NCBI GenBank assembly: GCA_047495785.1 | Contig: JBLDXI010000038.1 | Span: 124,001 to 188,000, forward strand | DNA length: 64,000 nt | From: Lepidodermella squamata | Taxonomy: Eukaryota; Animalia; Gastrotricha | Direction: 5' to 3' | Shown here: positions 1,787 to 9,408 of the stretch, in pieces | Layout of the letters: each line of letters begins with the position of its first letter | How positions within the stretch are numbered: position 1 is the stretch's first letter | The notes under the pieces: model-generated | Database searches by the model: none | Told to the model about the DNA's origin: nothing | The model's input: the letters and a program-made list of their open reading frames with translations, nothing else | Made by a program: the position numbers and the translations under genes

Positions 1787-4171
1787 TCAGTCAGAGATTG
1801 ACACGGTAGCTAGGATCGCATCACTACTTTCAGGGATTGCAGGGGTGTTTTTCAACGAGGTCGGCGATGATTCATTCGCGTTGGCTACTCGAGATCGGAT
1901 CGAAAAATGAAGCAGTGAACGGAAACCATTCTCACGAACAGTAGAGTCGTCAGGCGTCAAAATTTGTATCACCTGACGAGTCATTGGAGCAATAATGTCC
2001 TTTGTTACTACAGCACCTCGAACTTCGGCTTTAAGGCCAGTTGAACCACTCGCGTCTAGTTCGATGTATTGCCATTTTGTTCGGCTTGCATTTTCCGCAA
2101 CAACAACATAAGACCCGGCGATTTGTGAGCATTTGTAAAGGAACAAAGTGTCAGATAGGACGGATTTTTTGCCATGAGCCACAGTGAGTTGAATCAAAGC
2201 TTTACCTAAGAAATTACTCGGAACCGTCAATGTCTCAGCGAAAATCGGCCGTTGACTGTGCACTGAGAGTGCGTAGAGGTCTTCTTTTTGGTTGAAAGCT
2301 GCCTTGAAACTGATAGCAATGACTGCATACTGGCGTTCTGGTAGTAGAAACTCGCCAGCCTGCACAAAGGACCGACCAAATGACCAGTCACTATCGGATG
2401 ATCCAATTATATCAGTTGGAATGATATCAGCCTCTCGCCCAGTTGGGCTATCAACAGCACACACGACAATCGTCAAATCTAATGGGTGACGTTCTGATGC
2501 TTTCTTACTCCTGAGCCCAATTTGATGCAGCATCAAGTCGATTGTAGTCGGCTCAACAATTGTCAAGAGTGTTATCAGGCAGGATTTGGCTGGTTTTCGG
2601 TAAAATGGCGCCGTAAATCTAGCCTCCTGCCAGCTGGGACGTAATTTACAAACGTCAATTGCGCAGAAATAGGTTAGGAAGTCGCGGAAATCAATCCAGA
2701 AAATTCCGTCACTCTGCTGGTCATGCCTCAATTTGACATTCGCCGGGCAATGAGATTGCCACCTAGACGATGAATCATGCCACGCCCCTTTCCAATCACT
2801 TTTACCCCAAGGGTTGCGAAGGCTTAACAGGCGTAAGTTCCTCCCCATTGAATCTAAGCCTGAGTGGAGCTGGAGGACTGAATAGACATGGAAAGATACT
2901 AGTCCGATCTTTTCATACTGCTTCGGATTATCACCCGGCCGGCCACAGGTTGCTCCGATTAAGAACTCGGATTCTATGCAGGAGACCAGCTTAGCCCACA
3001 ACTCGTCTATTTCCTCCGTATTCGCTACATTTTCCAATTTAGGAAGAGAAATGGACTCGACAGGTTCCCCGGTAAGGGTCGAAAGGCCCTCTCGTGGATT
3101 ACCGCTCACCAAAGCTTCATAGCAACCGTAAGCCTTCGCGAGGGCTTTTTCAATCAAGGGCACCCACAACTGATTTTTCGAGGCTCGCGAGAACAGCAAA
3201 TGGTCGTTGAACATAGGGAACTTATCGTCGACCAAGACGACCTTCCACCTGCCGTCGATACACAATCTCAGGGCGTAAGAACCAGTTGGTTGAAAGTCAG
3301 GGGTAATGACGATTTGTTGAAGGGGCAGCTTATGAAGCACAATCAAGGACATTGCGGCAATAAACCAGCAGTTTCCAAGCGTTCCCTGAATAAATAATCA
3401 TTTTTTCATTATAATTTATATTGAAAATTGAAGAATAACCTGGCAAATGTCCAAGGGACTGGTGTCTTCTCTGTAAACACACCAGCAGTTGTTGTCTGAG
3501 CTGGAAGATTGATTCTGAAGCCATTGCCACATGGAAACATTATCATGCTGACTCCGCTTAGCCATGTCTTTCGAATACGGCCTGGTCCATGTTACTTTCG
3601 CCTGGGTAAACTCGGGATTCTTCTTGACGATATCAGCAAACATTTCGGACAGTTCGTTCGGGTTGTAAAGGATTGATCGAAGTGAATGGTTGAATGAAGG
3701 ATCTCTCCAAGGTGTCTTCTCGGATGACTGAGTCATAGTTATCTCACGCCATCTATCCAGCGCCCGCATAAGGTCGTTGTCGTAATCTTCAACAGTTTTT
3801 GTCATTGATTTGATGCGGACTATAGTCGATCCCATTTCGATTGATGGCCGGGGAGCGATGGTCCCCATCATCAAATCATCATAACTAACTCTACGCCCGG
3901 CATTTCGAGGAACCTCGGGCTGGTTATTCTGCTTCTTCGGCTGCTTGTTACTGTCTGAAGCATGCTTGTACCATGTTTTCAGCGTTTGAACCGACGGCAA
4001 GGGCCTGAGAGGCTCCTTACCTTGAAGCCTTAAAGAATCAAAGGCTGCGACTAAATCCTCTTGAACACTAGCAAAAGTCGCCCCTAGCTTGCATCTGATT
4101 TTGATATAGGCCTGAACATCTTGCCAAGTAATGGAATCCTCTGCATCAGAACTAATCTCCTTCTCATCCAT
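1787..4171 (-). CDS. CAPN15: SOL/calpain-15-type cysteine protease (CysPc + SOH domain) with an atypical N-terminus
   Basis: Two exons with a 54-nt intron at 3386-3439. Splicing restores the catalytic DICQ|GTLGNCWF. Catalytic His (FHVYSV) and Asn (LRNPWG) are present. The C-terminal VVAEN...RG...TKDIIAPMTRQVIQILT matches the SOL-homology domain. Confidence 0.88.
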
Positions 4172-4269
4172 TTTGCTAATGCTGCAAATGGTGACAAGTC
4201 TTTATTAGGGCAACAGCAAAATGTTATCTAATCTTGACAAGAATTATGTTGATAAGCAAAGCTGATATT

Positions 4270-4965
4270 TTATTCATTCATGCACGAAACAGATATTTTC
4301 AACACAGAATCTTTGAAATTTATGGAGACGATAGCGTAGTTGAGCGAGTAAAATTCCTCGGCTATGCGATTGAACCATGGTCGAACATTCGGCCAGATTA
4401 CAAAGCCAACATTCGCGCAAATGAATAGAACTTCGGTAGCGATCAGCAGCAGATAACCGATTTCTTCAAAGTGTTCCTTATCGGTCTCAGTCATAACAGT
4501 TTCATCCATGTCTTTGACTTTTGAAACAAATGCAATGCCAACAGAGCCAGCTAAATCGTCTATCAGGGTTAAACTGCAAAATTTCAGTATGGCCAGCGTG
4601 AGGCAGATGACGGCTAATGTTGCTAAACAGGCTCGTTTTATGAAGGATTTCGCATTTTCCGGAAGGCGCCACTGCGAGATAGGACGCCACTGGCGAATTA
4701 CCACAACTTCAAGGCTAGTTTTACATAATTGGCATGTTGTAGAGTGACCGTGTCGTATTGAAGCGCTGAGGCAGTCGAGATGAAGGTAGGCGACAGATCC
4801 CTTGCAGCTGCAAAAGTTCGTGTAAAGGAAAGGATCGCAGGGCGTTGGGGCTTCGTTAGCTAGGCATATGCGGCACGTCGGTGAGTCATCGGTTGATTCG
4901 AGATTTGAGGCTTCAAAATCAGAACCTGGCTTCATCCCATTCGTAAAATATTTCAAATTGCACAT
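4270..4965 (-). CDS. RING-CH (RINGv) E3 ubiquitin ligase, MARCH-type, two TM helices, intronless
   Basis: CRIC...CSCKGS..LHLDC...CQLC (C4HC3) followed by two hydrophobic segments. Confidence 0.85.
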   Translation of the reverse strand: MCNLKYFTNGMKPGSDFEASNLESTDDSPTCRICLANEAPTPCDPFLYTNFCSCKGSVAYLHLDCLSASIRHGHSTTCQLCKTSLEVVVIRQWRPISQWRLPENAKSFIKRACLATLAVICLTLAILKFCSLTLIDDLAGSVGIAFVSKVKDMDETVMTETDKEHFEEIGYLLLIATEVLFICANVGFVIWPNVRPWFNRIAEEFYSLNYAIVSINFKDSVLKISVSCMNE

Positions 4966-5317
4966 CGTAGTTTCACAACTAATATAAGACGTGGGTAAAT
5001 AATGGACACAGGTGTGTCACCAGCCGCGCCATCTGAAAATTACAGCTGACCGTAGAATGAAAGTTTTTGAAGGCAACATGTAGATACGAGCCAAATATGC
5101 ACTTAACGAGAGATCTCAGAACTAATCCGCGTAATTTGCGCTTTTCTCCGCTACTGATCAGCTAACTCTGCGATATCGAAATCCTCCTTAAAAAAATATG
5201 ATTATTGTTGAAAAATGAGCTGCACAATGACTGTGTACTGATCGCATAATAGCCTTTTGCATAAAAATCAATAAATAAATCCACATTGTATTTTTTGAGG
5301 ATCACAGAAGGCACATA

Positions 5318-5494
5318 CAGGGTGGCCAGAAAATTTCTCAGAGCGGGAATTCGCTGTGCATCGATTTAATGAGGAGTTTTAAGTTGAAGAATTTCAAGCA
5401 TTCTTTTGTCAATGGAACTCCTCAATTTCTTGAAACTCCTCATTAAAATGATGCGCAGCGAATTCCCGCTCTGAGGAATTTTTTTGCCACCCTG
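5318..5494. mobile_element. Tc1/mariner-type MITE (177 bp fold-back) with TA target duplication
   Basis: TA|CAGGGTGG...CCACCCTG|TA. Near-perfect inverted arms over ~70 bp (ctcagagcgggaattcgctg / cagcgaattcccgctctgag; ttaatgaggagttt / aaactcctcattaa). Confidence 0.85.
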
Positions 5495-5525
5495 TATATC
5501 ATTCCCAAGGTTCCGTTATTGAGAT

Positions 5526-6179
5526 TCAAAGCGTAGATTTGCATGGAGATTCTTGCTCTGAGCCATCAAGAGACAGTTCGTCCGAAAACTTGATCTCAAC
5601 TACAGGCGGCTGTTTGAATTTCAGAGAAGCTACGTACATGTTCATCCACATGAATTCGTTCCAAATGATGACCAGCTCCGGCCAAAGAATCGGCATTATT
5701 TTTCGCAGGAATATGTATAGGCTAACAAGAAGCAGAAGCATTGAAATCACGGTGGTGCCGATCGCCCTGTATTTTTCAATCTCATCCGTGTCGTAATCGT
5801 AATAACGCCCCGCAATATTGTAGCCGAGAACGAGCGACAAAGTGTTAAGAGCTGGTCGACCAGTAAAAACGATCGGGATAGCAGAAAAACTGATCAGCAG
5901 GGCCGTAAGAAATCGGGCGATTAGAAATTTCGCAACCGCGGGAATGCGCCATCTGAAAAATGGCTTCAACCTCAAGTCAACGACTGCTTGATAGTTGGCT
6001 AAACACAGCTGGCAGGCGAGTGAGTTGCCATGGATCAGTGACTTGGAAAAGCAGGACATGTGGATGAAGCCTATTGTACCCTTGCAGTTGCAGAAGTTGG
6101 TGAACAGCGGCTCATCTTCGCGAAATAAACAAATTCGACAGTGAGCGCTTCTCAACAAGTCGCTATCACTTGAACTCAT
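5526..6179 (-). CDS. Second RING-CH (RINGv) MARCH-type E3 ligase, tandem paralog, intronless
   Basis: CRIC...CNCKGT..IHMSC...CQLC, WRIP motif shared with the 4270-4965 paralog, two TM segments. Confidence 0.85.
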   Translation of the reverse strand: MSSSDSDLLRSAHCRICLFREDEPLFTNFCNCKGTIGFIHMSCFSKSLIHGNSLACQLCLANYQAVVDLRLKPFFRWRIPAVAKFLIARFLTALLISFSAIPIVFTGRPALNTLSLVLGYNIAGRYYDYDTDEIEKYRAIGTTVISMLLLLVSLYIFLRKIMPILWPELVIIWNEFMWMNMYVASLKFKQPPVVEIKFSDELSLDGSEQESPCKSTL

Positions 6180-6684
6180 GAAGTGCGATTCGTATGCAAA
6201 AATAGTAGCTTTTTGATTTTAGCTTCAATATTTCAGCAGTGAAGTACTTGCAAGTCGTAAATGTGAGAGAATTATTGATCGCCCACCGTGCCACGCGGTG
6301 GATAGTGAAAAATATTAAATCATTAATAATTCAGGCATTTCAGGTATATCTCGATCTGTAAACTTCAAATTGCCTCATCGCGAATTTGCAAAAAAACTTG
6401 TAAAATAATGACATCGTTTTATTATTGACCCAATTAATTTGAAGTGCAATTAATAATGAATTATTCATGCTGGCATCAGTTTGGATGAATGTCAAGCATC
6501 ATCACTCATTTTCCCTAATACCATGGAACATCGCAGGAAGAGGCGTGGGAGGTCTCAGACCTGAACCGAATAGATACTCCCATCTGCCTGATAAAGATTG
6601 TACTAACTTGTGTACACGAGATAACGGAAATATAGACTGAAAGACTGAGACGTATCAACAAAAAGCAGAAACCAAATTGTAATA

Positions 6685-7763
6685 ATGTTCTGTCTTATTT
6701 ATATTGTACTTGCATTTTCCGGATGTAGTTTAGCCCAGGACTGGAATTACTATGGTATACCTGTCTTCATTGCCTTCTTCACAAAATATCGGAATTATTT
6801 TTATTGAAAATCAGATTTGAATAACTGGGCTAAAGTAGCGCCAGCTTGTGGAGAAGGAAAAAGCCAGTCACCAATTGATATTAACCCAGAAGTTGCGTCA
6901 TTCACCGACGAATTACTTTCCAAGCCATTACAACTCGACAACCAACTCGTGCAAGTTTGTGGCTCGATGGAAAACAGCGGCAATGGTATTGTGTGGCGAC
7001 GCGACTCAAACGCGGACAAAGCGCCGAAAATGTCTGGGGCCATGTTGTCAGACACCTTCATCCTCGATTCGTTGCACTTCCATTGGGGAGACAAAGACGA
7101 TAATGGGCAGTGCTTCGGCTCTGAACACCTCATAGACTACAAACCTGCACCGCTCGAAGCTCATTTCGTCCACTACAACAGCAAGTATGCGTCGTTGAAT
7201 GAAGCTAGGGATCATCCCGATGGCCTCGCTGTGCTTGGTCTGATATTTCAAATTGTCCCTGATACACCAAAGCCAAGTTATGACTACTCAATTCTAACCA
7301 ATAATTTACACCTGCTAACCATGCCGAGTTCTACAGGTGAGTTCCGAAGCTTTTTTGCCGCTTTTAAAGTCGAATTTTTTCAGTTGAAAAAGTATGTTTC
7401 CAAGCCGGGCAATTAGTTCCGTTTTCCGATCTAATGAATGGTCATATGACGTACTATCGATATCAAGGGTCTCTAACGACGCCAGGTTGTAACGAAAACG
7501 TATCTTGGCTTGTCGCTAGGGACAGGCTAGGCGTCACTCGTGATCAGTTGAACAAGTTTCGAGACGGCTCGCTGAAAAGCGTTGCGAAGTCCAAAGTTGC
7601 CCCTTTTGAAAATCTACCGCTGGTCAACACATTTCGGCCTATCCAACGCCGAAATTCTCGGGCAATCTACACAAATGACAAACCTTTTTCTTCTTCTTCT
7701 GCAAAGCTTTCATTTAGCTGCATTTTGCTGTTTATTGCTGCTATCAACGCTATTCTCGCTTGA
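6685..7763 (+). CDS. Alpha carbonic anhydrase, secreted/GPI-anchored type
   Basis: Signal peptide MFCLIYIVLAFSGCSLAQDWNY; QSPIDI; Zn ligands in LHFHWG and EAHFVH; GSEH; YQGSLTTPGC; hydrophobic C-terminal tail. Introns at ~6755-6814 and ~7337-7383. Confidence 0.92.
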
Positions 7764-7770
7764 AGTTAAT

Positions 7771-9408
7771 TTAGGCAAATGGAAGGTTTTCAATAAATCT
7801 GTAAATAAGGTCAAATGCCTGAAGTGGCTTATCGTATGGAACAGCGTGACTAGCATCGCGAACAACTGCGAAAGTAAGATTCCGGGCTTTGGTGACGTAG
7901 CCGCTGACGTCGTTGCTGTCAGACAGCAAATGCGGTAGGCTAACGCCCGTCCAGACAGTTCGATTAGCGGCTGCTGCTAGAAAGTCCGCTTTACCAGGCC
8001 AGTTTAGTCGTCGCAAAAACGTATCTGTAGCCGGCGTCGGGACAATCATGTCTTTCATACCGCTGAAATACAAAACTTTGACCTGGCTCGAGTTGAGCAT
8101 TTCTTCGACAAGAGGTCGAACACTTTGCGGAACGTCGTCTACCAGGTACTGTTTAACAACCAAATTCAGATGGGTGAATGTTTGATTCCCGACGTGCAGT
8201 TTTAAACGAGTATCGTCCGACGTAACGACGGGTACCCAGCTAGACCAAGATGGAGGCTCAGACTGGAAATTCAAATAAAAATATTTTGAATAAGACTTCG
8301 AATTAATCACCATACCGGGCACATGTTTACAAAGTCGTAGTATATCAGGCATCCAGAGCTGTTTTGATAAAGACTGGGGTATGGGAACAAAATCCCATGT
8401 AAAATGATCTCGTTGAATATTTCGTAAGCTTGGGTCCATTTTTGTTCGTGGATACTAGAAACGAATGACTGGGAGTAGTTTCGGAATGTGAGAAGCTCAG
8501 GATAACTAGCAAGGCCCAGGTTGTAGAGATGCTCGCCAATTTGCGGAACCATCTGTTCACGAAAGTTTAAAATTGAATTCAAAAGAAAAATACCGGAAAC
8601 ATACCGATTCCGGATCACTAAGGCCGTTTCCAACAATAATACCGTTCAGTTTGATGCCACTGCCACCTTGCCATTCTTTCCAAATCCGGTGGCCAAATGC
8701 TGGGACGTATTTACCGCCATAAGACTCCCCGGCGACGTAGACACCCTGCTGATTAGCGTTAGGAAATACCTGCACGAATTGCTTGAGGAAAATGTACAGG
8801 TGATCAGCGACTTCGTCTTCGTTAGTTCTGTAGTCACTGTCTTGAGTTACGAAGCTGTAACCAGTGCCGACTGGGCTGTCGATGAAAATGACGTTGTAGT
8901 ACATGCTCCATGGCAACTGGTCGCGAATCGTCACCTTAAGATATTATATAGGATTATCATTTGATAAGAGGGAAGAATATAACAGAAGAATCTTCACCTT
9001 GTTCGTCGTTCCATCTATCATGTAAGGTCCGATTTCGACGAATTGGCCGAAAAGGCTCGGCGAGCCAGGCCCGCCTTGCAGCCAAACAATGAGAGGAGTG
9101 TCTTGTTCGTAACGCATCGTTGCCGGGAAATACCAGAAATACAGACTGGCTTGCGTCGTGTCATTTACAGTTATATAACCACTGTGGCTTTTGACATCTT
9201 TCCCGGCGATGAACGGCGGAACTTCGCTATCAACCCTAGCTGAAGACCGGAACAGAGTAGGATATTAAGCCTTGCATTTTTTTATATGCTAACCTTCATC
9301 GAACCTTCCGGCTTTAATCAAAGGCGTGAGAAAGAGTGCCTGTCCAGGGTCTGATTGGACCTCGGACGCAAAGGCACAAAATAAGAGGAGAAATCCTGTT
9401 AAAACCAT
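7771..9408 (-). CDS. CPVL: Serine carboxypeptidase S10, CPVL/vitellogenic-like, copy 1
   Basis: Signal peptide plus ALFLTPLIKAG; WLQGGPGS; FIDSPVGTGYS; catalytic GESYGG, GMKD and DASH; four short introns. Confidence 0.88.

Follow-up and report, generated by a model that had tools for sequence, protein, structure and literature searches.

A 64,000-nucleotide stretch of the genome of the gastrotrich Lepidodermella squamata (contig JBLDXI010000038.1, positions 124,001 to 188,000; hereafter the window) encodes on its minus strand a calpain of the SOL/CAPN15 type that lacks N-terminal RanBP2/NZF zinc fingers and carries in their place a head with a predicted tri-helical domain, whereas a paralog elsewhere in the same genome has kept its fingers. 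The explanation that we favour, with a probability of about one half, is that this SOL duplicate exchanged its head, that the new head derives from the first helix-turn-helix (HTH1) of a Tc1/mariner-superfamily transposase and that it has a role in targeting. The combination of a tri-helical head with the protease core (CysPc) and the SOL region, next to a finger-bearing paralog at another locus, constitutes a new variant within a known protease family.

A SOL-type calpain without zinc fingers

The gene consists of two exons separated by one intron and encodes 776 amino acids in total, according to a model built from the list of open reading frames (ORFs) and from splice sites read in the sequence (Table 1). 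A peptide at 3955-4120, which a first-pass annotation of the window had singled out as the unusual N-terminus of a calpain, is encoded as quoted: it corresponds to residues 18-72 of a 251-residue minus-strand ORF (4171..3416), the same ORF that holds the calpain pre-catalytic region. The accompanying statement that this head is in frame with an intact catalytic triad and SOL region is likewise borne out. The triad is complete, with Cys250 (3370-3368) in the motif GNCW, His410 (2890-2888) and Asn435 (2815-2813); exon 2 matches Peptidase_C2 with E = 4.6e-56 in a Pfam scan, and 88-97% of its length aligns with CAPN15/calpain-D proteins bearing PF26741 (CalpD_C, the SOL domain). It is solely by this alignment coverage that the SOL domain of the window gene was assigned, the Pfam set scanned being apparently without PF26741: P0001, a metagenomic protein listed with that domain, gave only Peptidase_C2. 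Upstream of the catalytic cysteine, the pre-catalytic region is also recognisable in P0001 (BLASTP 3e-06 over residues 39-199), with a conserved VEDYD..W.RP block. By homology the gene is a SOL/CAPN15-type calpain whose CysPc core and SOL region are intact.

Zinc fingers of the W-x-C-x2-C type are missing, as had been noted from the translations. Exon 1 contains no CxxC pair, and a six-frame translation of the entire 64-kb window is free of the RanBP2-type motif W-x-C-x2-C...C-x2-C, so that it is unlikely, judging from these patterns, that finger exons are spliced in from nearby. Database searches and folding were carried out exon by exon, and the finger-motif check spanned both exon translations.

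What precedes the pre-catalytic region is an acidic tail with six Asp/Glu and one Lys/Arg, a three-helix domain of about 60 residues and a basic linker that is probably disordered, to judge from its low model confidence.

A finger-bearing paralog and the history of the duplicate

Within the 121-Mb genome assembly (151 contigs), a second SOL-type gene lies on contig C3 and shares 47% identity with exon 2 of the window gene. A separate zinc-finger SOL paralog, which the first-pass annotation had proposed looking for, is thus present: two exons upstream of its catalytic exons match Zn_ribbon_RanBP (3.5e-06 and 3.5e-04), the first of them carrying the Thr-Phe dipeptide that characterises ubiquitin-binding NZF fingers as defined in PMC12805371. 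The exon of this paralog that is equivalent to the pre-catalytic part of the window gene matches Peptidase_C2 positions 1-108. The best database match, P0001, which comes from a metagenome contig, is 69% identical to the C3 paralog over 372 aligned residues of the paralog's large exon.

A quick maximum-likelihood tree that included exon 2 of the window gene and the large exon of the C3 paralog placed the former as sister to the pair formed by the C3 paralog and P0001 (Shimodaira-Hasegawa-like approximate likelihood ratio test support 100), with a terminal branch of 2.47, where that of the paralog is 0.59; given the long branches, we rely on the tree for nothing beyond that local placement. The window gene is thus an old, lineage-restricted and fast-evolving SOL duplicate that has lost its fingers. 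An origin as a retrogene, considered because the C3 paralog has at least four introns and the window gene just one, was set aside: intron counts are uninformative here, P0001 being intron-free over the same span.

As observations in their own right, P0001, a metagenomic ortholog of the C3 paralog (locus L013), is encoded by one unbroken 740-codon frame, and introns vary strongly within the lineage. Calpain-like places in the L. squamata genome number about a dozen in all; two calpain-domain loci among them (C31:19960-20637 and C48:637607-638284) have identical scores and identical 653-residue frames, and may be haplotypes that were not collapsed or the product of a recent duplication.

The head resembles the first HTH of Mos1 in its predicted fold

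AlphaFold2 models, computed from the single sequence without an alignment in two contexts (residues 1-100 and 1-244), agree on three helices spanning residues 16-29, 33-49 and 61-75, with block-mean predicted local distance difference test (pLDDT) values of 75-94 over both models and of 77-92 across the domain when residues 1-100 are folded. The head is accordingly modelled as a simple tri-helical bundle of about 60 residues, in which an 11-residue loop between helices 2 and 3 lies directly before helix 3 and the net charge of residues 14-75 is about +2, i.e. nearly neutral. A reading of the three helices as a ubiquitin-binding domain of the UBA/CUE kind was rejected, no such fold having appeared in any of the fold lists.

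The top Foldseek match in the PDB is the transposase Mos1 (E 1.5, probability 0.63-0.66). In a VIA-align comparison with 48,161 representative chains Mos1 ranked second (Z 5.2, root-mean-square deviation (RMSD) 2.3 Å, 53 residues superposed on Mos1 5-57), with an RMSD that is nearly the lowest in the list and an identity of 23% that is the highest, the next values being 17% and 16% and most rows falling between 2 and 14%; SETMAR was recovered with Z 4.7. After re-ranking, places 1-4 were all occupied by Mos1 (overall Z 5.2-5.5, RMSD 2.3-2.6 Å, 53-55 residues, 20-23% identity). The region matched is HTH1 (Mos1 residues 3-58). Furthermore, HTH_48 (PF17906), the family of this domain, is carried by four of the nine rows of an Atlas shape search, and the nearest clusters in a language-model comparison are DUF4817 (0.86) and HTH_48 (0.85). 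The HTH named DUF4817 (PF16087) belongs to a different group of mariner-like transposases.

DUF4817 was compared with the head by way of profiles built from transposase relics of the L. squamata genome itself and from 27 database relatives of a full-length relic; a tblastn search of the relic against plasmids for a Himar1-type HTH_48 seed gave no match. The DUF4817 profiles score the head at 2.6-3.0 bits in hmmsearch and at P 0.003-0.0045 (probability 8-11%) in hhalign, in an alignment covering only the loop and helix 3 (P-x-R-P-x-P-S-x-x-T ... K; 16-20 columns). Scores as high as that of the head were reached by 4-10 of 909 real-protein decoys and by 33-39 of 3000 shuffles, corresponding to an empirical p of 0.004-0.013, so that the match appears nominally significant for a hypothesis stated beforehand and is far from proof.

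Several results weigh against a transposase origin. Pfam scans of residues 1-72 and 1-251 yield neither HTH_48, DUF4817 nor any other HTH family at E ≤ 10; the HTH_48 profile thus does not recognise the head that had been likened to it. When residues 1-80 were run exhaustively with HMMER against 1.84 billion proteins, no relative emerged (the lone match, a bacterial leucine-rich-repeat kinase, is a leucine-rich-repeat artefact that runs through the repeat EPLRALTSLQTL), and a phmmer search of the PDB sequences returned noise only, at E ≥ 1. No ortholog of the window gene turned up in protein collections of 1.84e9 and 5.8e9 entries. At the genome level, the DUF4817 scan passes over the locus of the calpain head, and scans with HTH_48 and Transposase_1 find nothing, the latter being a weak negative since the profile is silent in control genomes too. 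Neither a second HTH nor a DDE domain has left any trace in the window gene itself. Compared with the usual DNA-binding HTHs of transposases, the head has the 11 extra residues before helix 3 and a near-neutral charge. As for the fold, a Z of about 5 is one that Mos1 shares with unrelated helical proteins, VIA-align guidance holds that values below 8 may mean merely a shared arrangement, and language-model scores below 0.9 count as leads only. Finally, a single sequence underlies the signals of fold, language model and profile, and these do not count as independent of one another.

Some of these results also feed the main competing explanation, namely a bundle of three helices that is specific to the lineage, arisen de novo or from a host domain that goes unrecognised, which would still stand in for the fingers in protein interaction or regulation and whose likeness to Mos1 HTH1 would be convergent. 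Three-helix folds are very common, and Z values near 5 are shared here with FF domains and with phage and membrane-protein helices; moreover, the head is an orphan in every sequence search and has no copy in its own genome besides itself, its match to the DUF4817 profiles is confined to 16-20 columns, and its charge and long loop between helices 2 and 3 fit such a bundle as well. Against convergence stand the placing of Mos1 first in Foldseek and second in VIA-align with the top identity and almost the lowest RMSD, the coincidence of the match with exactly HTH1, the return of HTH_48 and DUF4817 by the Atlas shape and feature searches independently, and, at p ≤ 0.01, the DUF4817 signature of loop and helix 3. 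We give an unrelated bundle appreciable, if minority, weight. Homology of the head to a transposase-type HTH1 is plausible, with chances that we judge about even; of the mariner-HTH origin proposed at first pass, the part that stands is the predicted fold, whose best-ranked match is Mos1 HTH1 with SETMAR close by, at a Z shared with unrelated helical chains, and the part that does not is recognition by sequence, where the HTH families of Pfam, 1.84e9 proteins and the PDB are silent and DUF4817 reaches only the loop and helix 3.

The head is coding and probably translated

Six ORFs of the window that have homology support, among them calpain exon 2, two RING-variant (RINGv) ORFs and ORFs whose translations look like a carbonic anhydrase and a serine carboxypeptidase, served to train a codon model. 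It gives residues 1-80 a log-likelihood of +8.4 with no stop in the frame of the gene, whereas the other five frames score from -18 to -45 and contain 4-7 stops each; for comparison, the conserved pre-catalytic part scores +12.3, the linker -1.1 and the adjacent intergenic stretch -5. By its codon usage the segment of residues 14-75 is coding. An in-frame stop (4204-4202) lies shortly upstream of the ATG at 4171, and a TTTGCAG, read from the sequence as resembling a 3' splice acceptor, ends 10 nucleotides 5' of that ATG. We infer that translation begins at this first ATG, and the TTTGCAG is a candidate spliced-leader acceptor, which would place the junction at about 4181. A search of the genome for the nematode SL1 RNA family found no match, which is uninformative since the controls were also silent.

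That the first ~100 codons are instead 5' untranslated region, with a start at Met101, Met102, Met113 or Met123 and a protein that is merely a finger-less SOL calpain, would be consistent with those internal methionines and with the neutral codon score of the linker. It is nonetheless improbable: 100 codons are open above Met101 while every other frame of residues 1-80 is interrupted, the coding score of the same segment contrasts with that of the intergenic stretch beside it, the ORF opens just after an in-frame stop with the TTTGCAG in front of its first ATG, and the segment is predicted to fold with confidence.

Genomic surroundings

Table 1. Positions of the features of the calpain gene, its neighbourhood and related loci (window coordinates unless a locus is named).
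Feature	Position	Strand	Details
Exon 1	4171..3440	-	244 amino acids; ATG at 4171 to donor CAG/GT at 3440/3439
Sole intron	3439..3386	-	54 nucleotides; GT..AG; phase 0; between DICQ and GTLGNCW
Exon 2	3385..1787	-	532 amino acids and stop; remainder of CysPc, then SOL-homology C-terminal region
Acidic N-terminal tail, residues 1-13	4133..4171	-	6 D/E, 1 K/R; low model confidence
Three-helix (HTH-like) domain, residues 14-75 (predicted)	3947..4132	-	AlphaFold2 models, fold matches and codon usage; Pfam blank
Basic linker, residues 76-125	3797..3946	-	Isoelectric point 10.6; contains KQPKKQ and AGRR; pLDDT <50
Pre-catalytic region and start of CysPc, residues 126-244	3440..3796	-	Homologous to the equivalent region of CAPN15 relatives
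TTTGCAG, 3' splice-acceptor-like site	4182..4188	-	10 nucleotides 5' of the ATG; read from the sequence
AATAAA	4201..4206	-	Between the RINGv stop at 4270 and the calpain ATG
Miniature inverted-repeat transposable element (MITE), 183 bp	5315-5497		69-nucleotide terminal inverted arms, TA flanks; between two RINGv genes, outside the calpain gene
Canonical SOL/CAPN15 paralog	L012 (G000:C3:1109000-1118999), ~4953-9145	+	Two RanBP2/NZF finger exons; at least four introns
DUF4817-type HTH places	L034-L053, e.g. L035:1480-2280, L047:571-1359		Several continue into DDE regions

A source for a transposase-derived head existed in this genome, as relics of DUF4817 joined to DDE regions are present in it: the DUF4817 scan marks 27 places, at least 18 of them above the cut-off, some of which run on into mariner-like DDE regions. 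Since DUF4817 places are found where the HTH_48 and Transposase_1 models are silent, the resident mariner-like elements appear, by these profiles, to belong to the DUF4817 group. Separately, a locus on contig C4 (L015:1303-2361, minus strand; G000:C4) holds an apparently intact 353-residue transposase frame with a DDE_3 match of 80.7 bits, above the cut-off; this transposase is IS630/Tc1-like by its look and has near-identical decayed copies on contigs C46, C40 and C4.

The Tc1/mariner MITE that the first-pass annotation had pointed out near the head is real, with arms complementary at 90% over 69 nucleotides, a TA on either side, no coding capacity and at least 40 genomic copies scored at 87-94% identity, out of 188 first-look candidates; its ends resemble those of Tc1-type elements. 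No link between the element and the calpain head is visible, and it tells nothing about where the head came from.

Upstream of the calpain and on its strand are two tandem genes for RING-variant (MARCH-like) membrane proteins (4270-4965 and 5526-6179, both minus). The nearer one stops 98 nucleotides 5' of the calpain ATG, with both the AATAAA and the TTTGCAG in between, an operon-like spacing; the AATAAA is the probable poly(A) signal of this upstream gene. Farther away, two spliced genes with short introns and an ordinary look, known from their translations only, read like a carbonic anhydrase (6817-7763, plus) and, convergent with it, a serine carboxypeptidase (7771-9117, minus).

Discussion

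In the sequence of events that we favour, a lineage-specific and fast-evolving duplicate of SOL/CAPN15 would have swapped the head that does the targeting. The C3 paralog retains the RanBP2/NZF fingers of the ancestor, which bind ubiquitin; they are lost from the window gene, whose new head, made up of the acidic tail, the tri-helical domain and the basic disordered linker, shares one exon with the pre-catalytic part of the calpain. This head would stem from the first HTH of a Tc1/mariner-superfamily transposase, of either the Mos1 HTH_48 or the DUF4817 type, and would have diverged past recognition by sequence. The fingers of mammalian CAPN15 bind ubiquitin and make it a ubiquitin-directed protease (PMC12805371); since they direct the enzyme to ubiquitin, their replacement should redirect the protease, and the head would most probably serve as a new module for recognition or localisation, steering it to partners other than ubiquitin chains. 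Such partners could be proteins, as for the mariner HTH of Caenorhabditis F-box A2, or nucleic acid: the near-neutral charge of the tri-helical domain favours the former, and the basic linker makes the latter possible too.

A more specific version, in which the head would still bind transposon ends, or pair with the N-terminal HTH of active transposases, and so bring the protease to transposition complexes or chromatin sites, where it would cleave proteins, strikes us as less probable still than a head that is untranslated. Were it true, the gene would encode a protease-based device for transposon control or chromatin processing, in which a ubiquitin reader had been swapped for a transposon reader. 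Least probable of all is that the duplicate in the window has no function, being in decay or misassembled, and that its head is junk fused by rearrangement, as the branch of 2.47 against 0.59 and the lack of an ortholog in public protein data might suggest; against this stand an intact triad, a reading frame of 776 codons whose only intron is clean, full-length alignment through the SOL domain and coding-type codon usage throughout.

A paralog that has kept its protease and SOL region under a different head is a natural test of how much the head weighs in the choice of substrate. If the head is transposase-derived, the gene would count as a host-transposase fusion in which the partner is a protease, parallel to the mariner HTH of F-box A2 in proteostasis; no fusion of a transposase domain with a protease was found in the literature searched. 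If it is not, what remains is still a clear replacement of a module after duplication, of modest general interest.

Comparison with known systems

The likeness to SOL/CAPN15 comprises a CysPc with its Cys-His-Asn triad, a SOL region aligned to its end and grouping with the C3 gene in the tree; the difference lies in the N-terminal RanBP2/NZF fingers, which give way to a tri-helical domain, and in a far longer branch. With HTH1 of Mos1 and SETMAR and with DUF4817 the head has in common its N-terminal position, its predicted tri-helical make-up and a Pro/Ser-capped helix 3 with a conserved aromatic residue, whereas it falls below every sequence threshold, has a loop between helices 2 and 3 that is 11 residues longer and is followed by neither a second HTH nor a DDE domain.

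Caenorhabditis F-box A2 combines an N-terminal Mos1-type HTH with an F-box and an FTH domain, and the HTH, which is needed for localisation to granules, serves as a protein-binding platform rather than in transcription (PMC12062965); the word calpain has no occurrence in the main text of that paper. If the head of the window gene is of mariner type, it would by analogy share with the F-box A2 and SETMAR fusions an N-terminal HTH placed ahead of a host proteostasis module. It would differ from F-box A2 in that the partner is a protease, in being a single gene rather than an expanded family, and in that a single exon holds both the HTH and host sequence.

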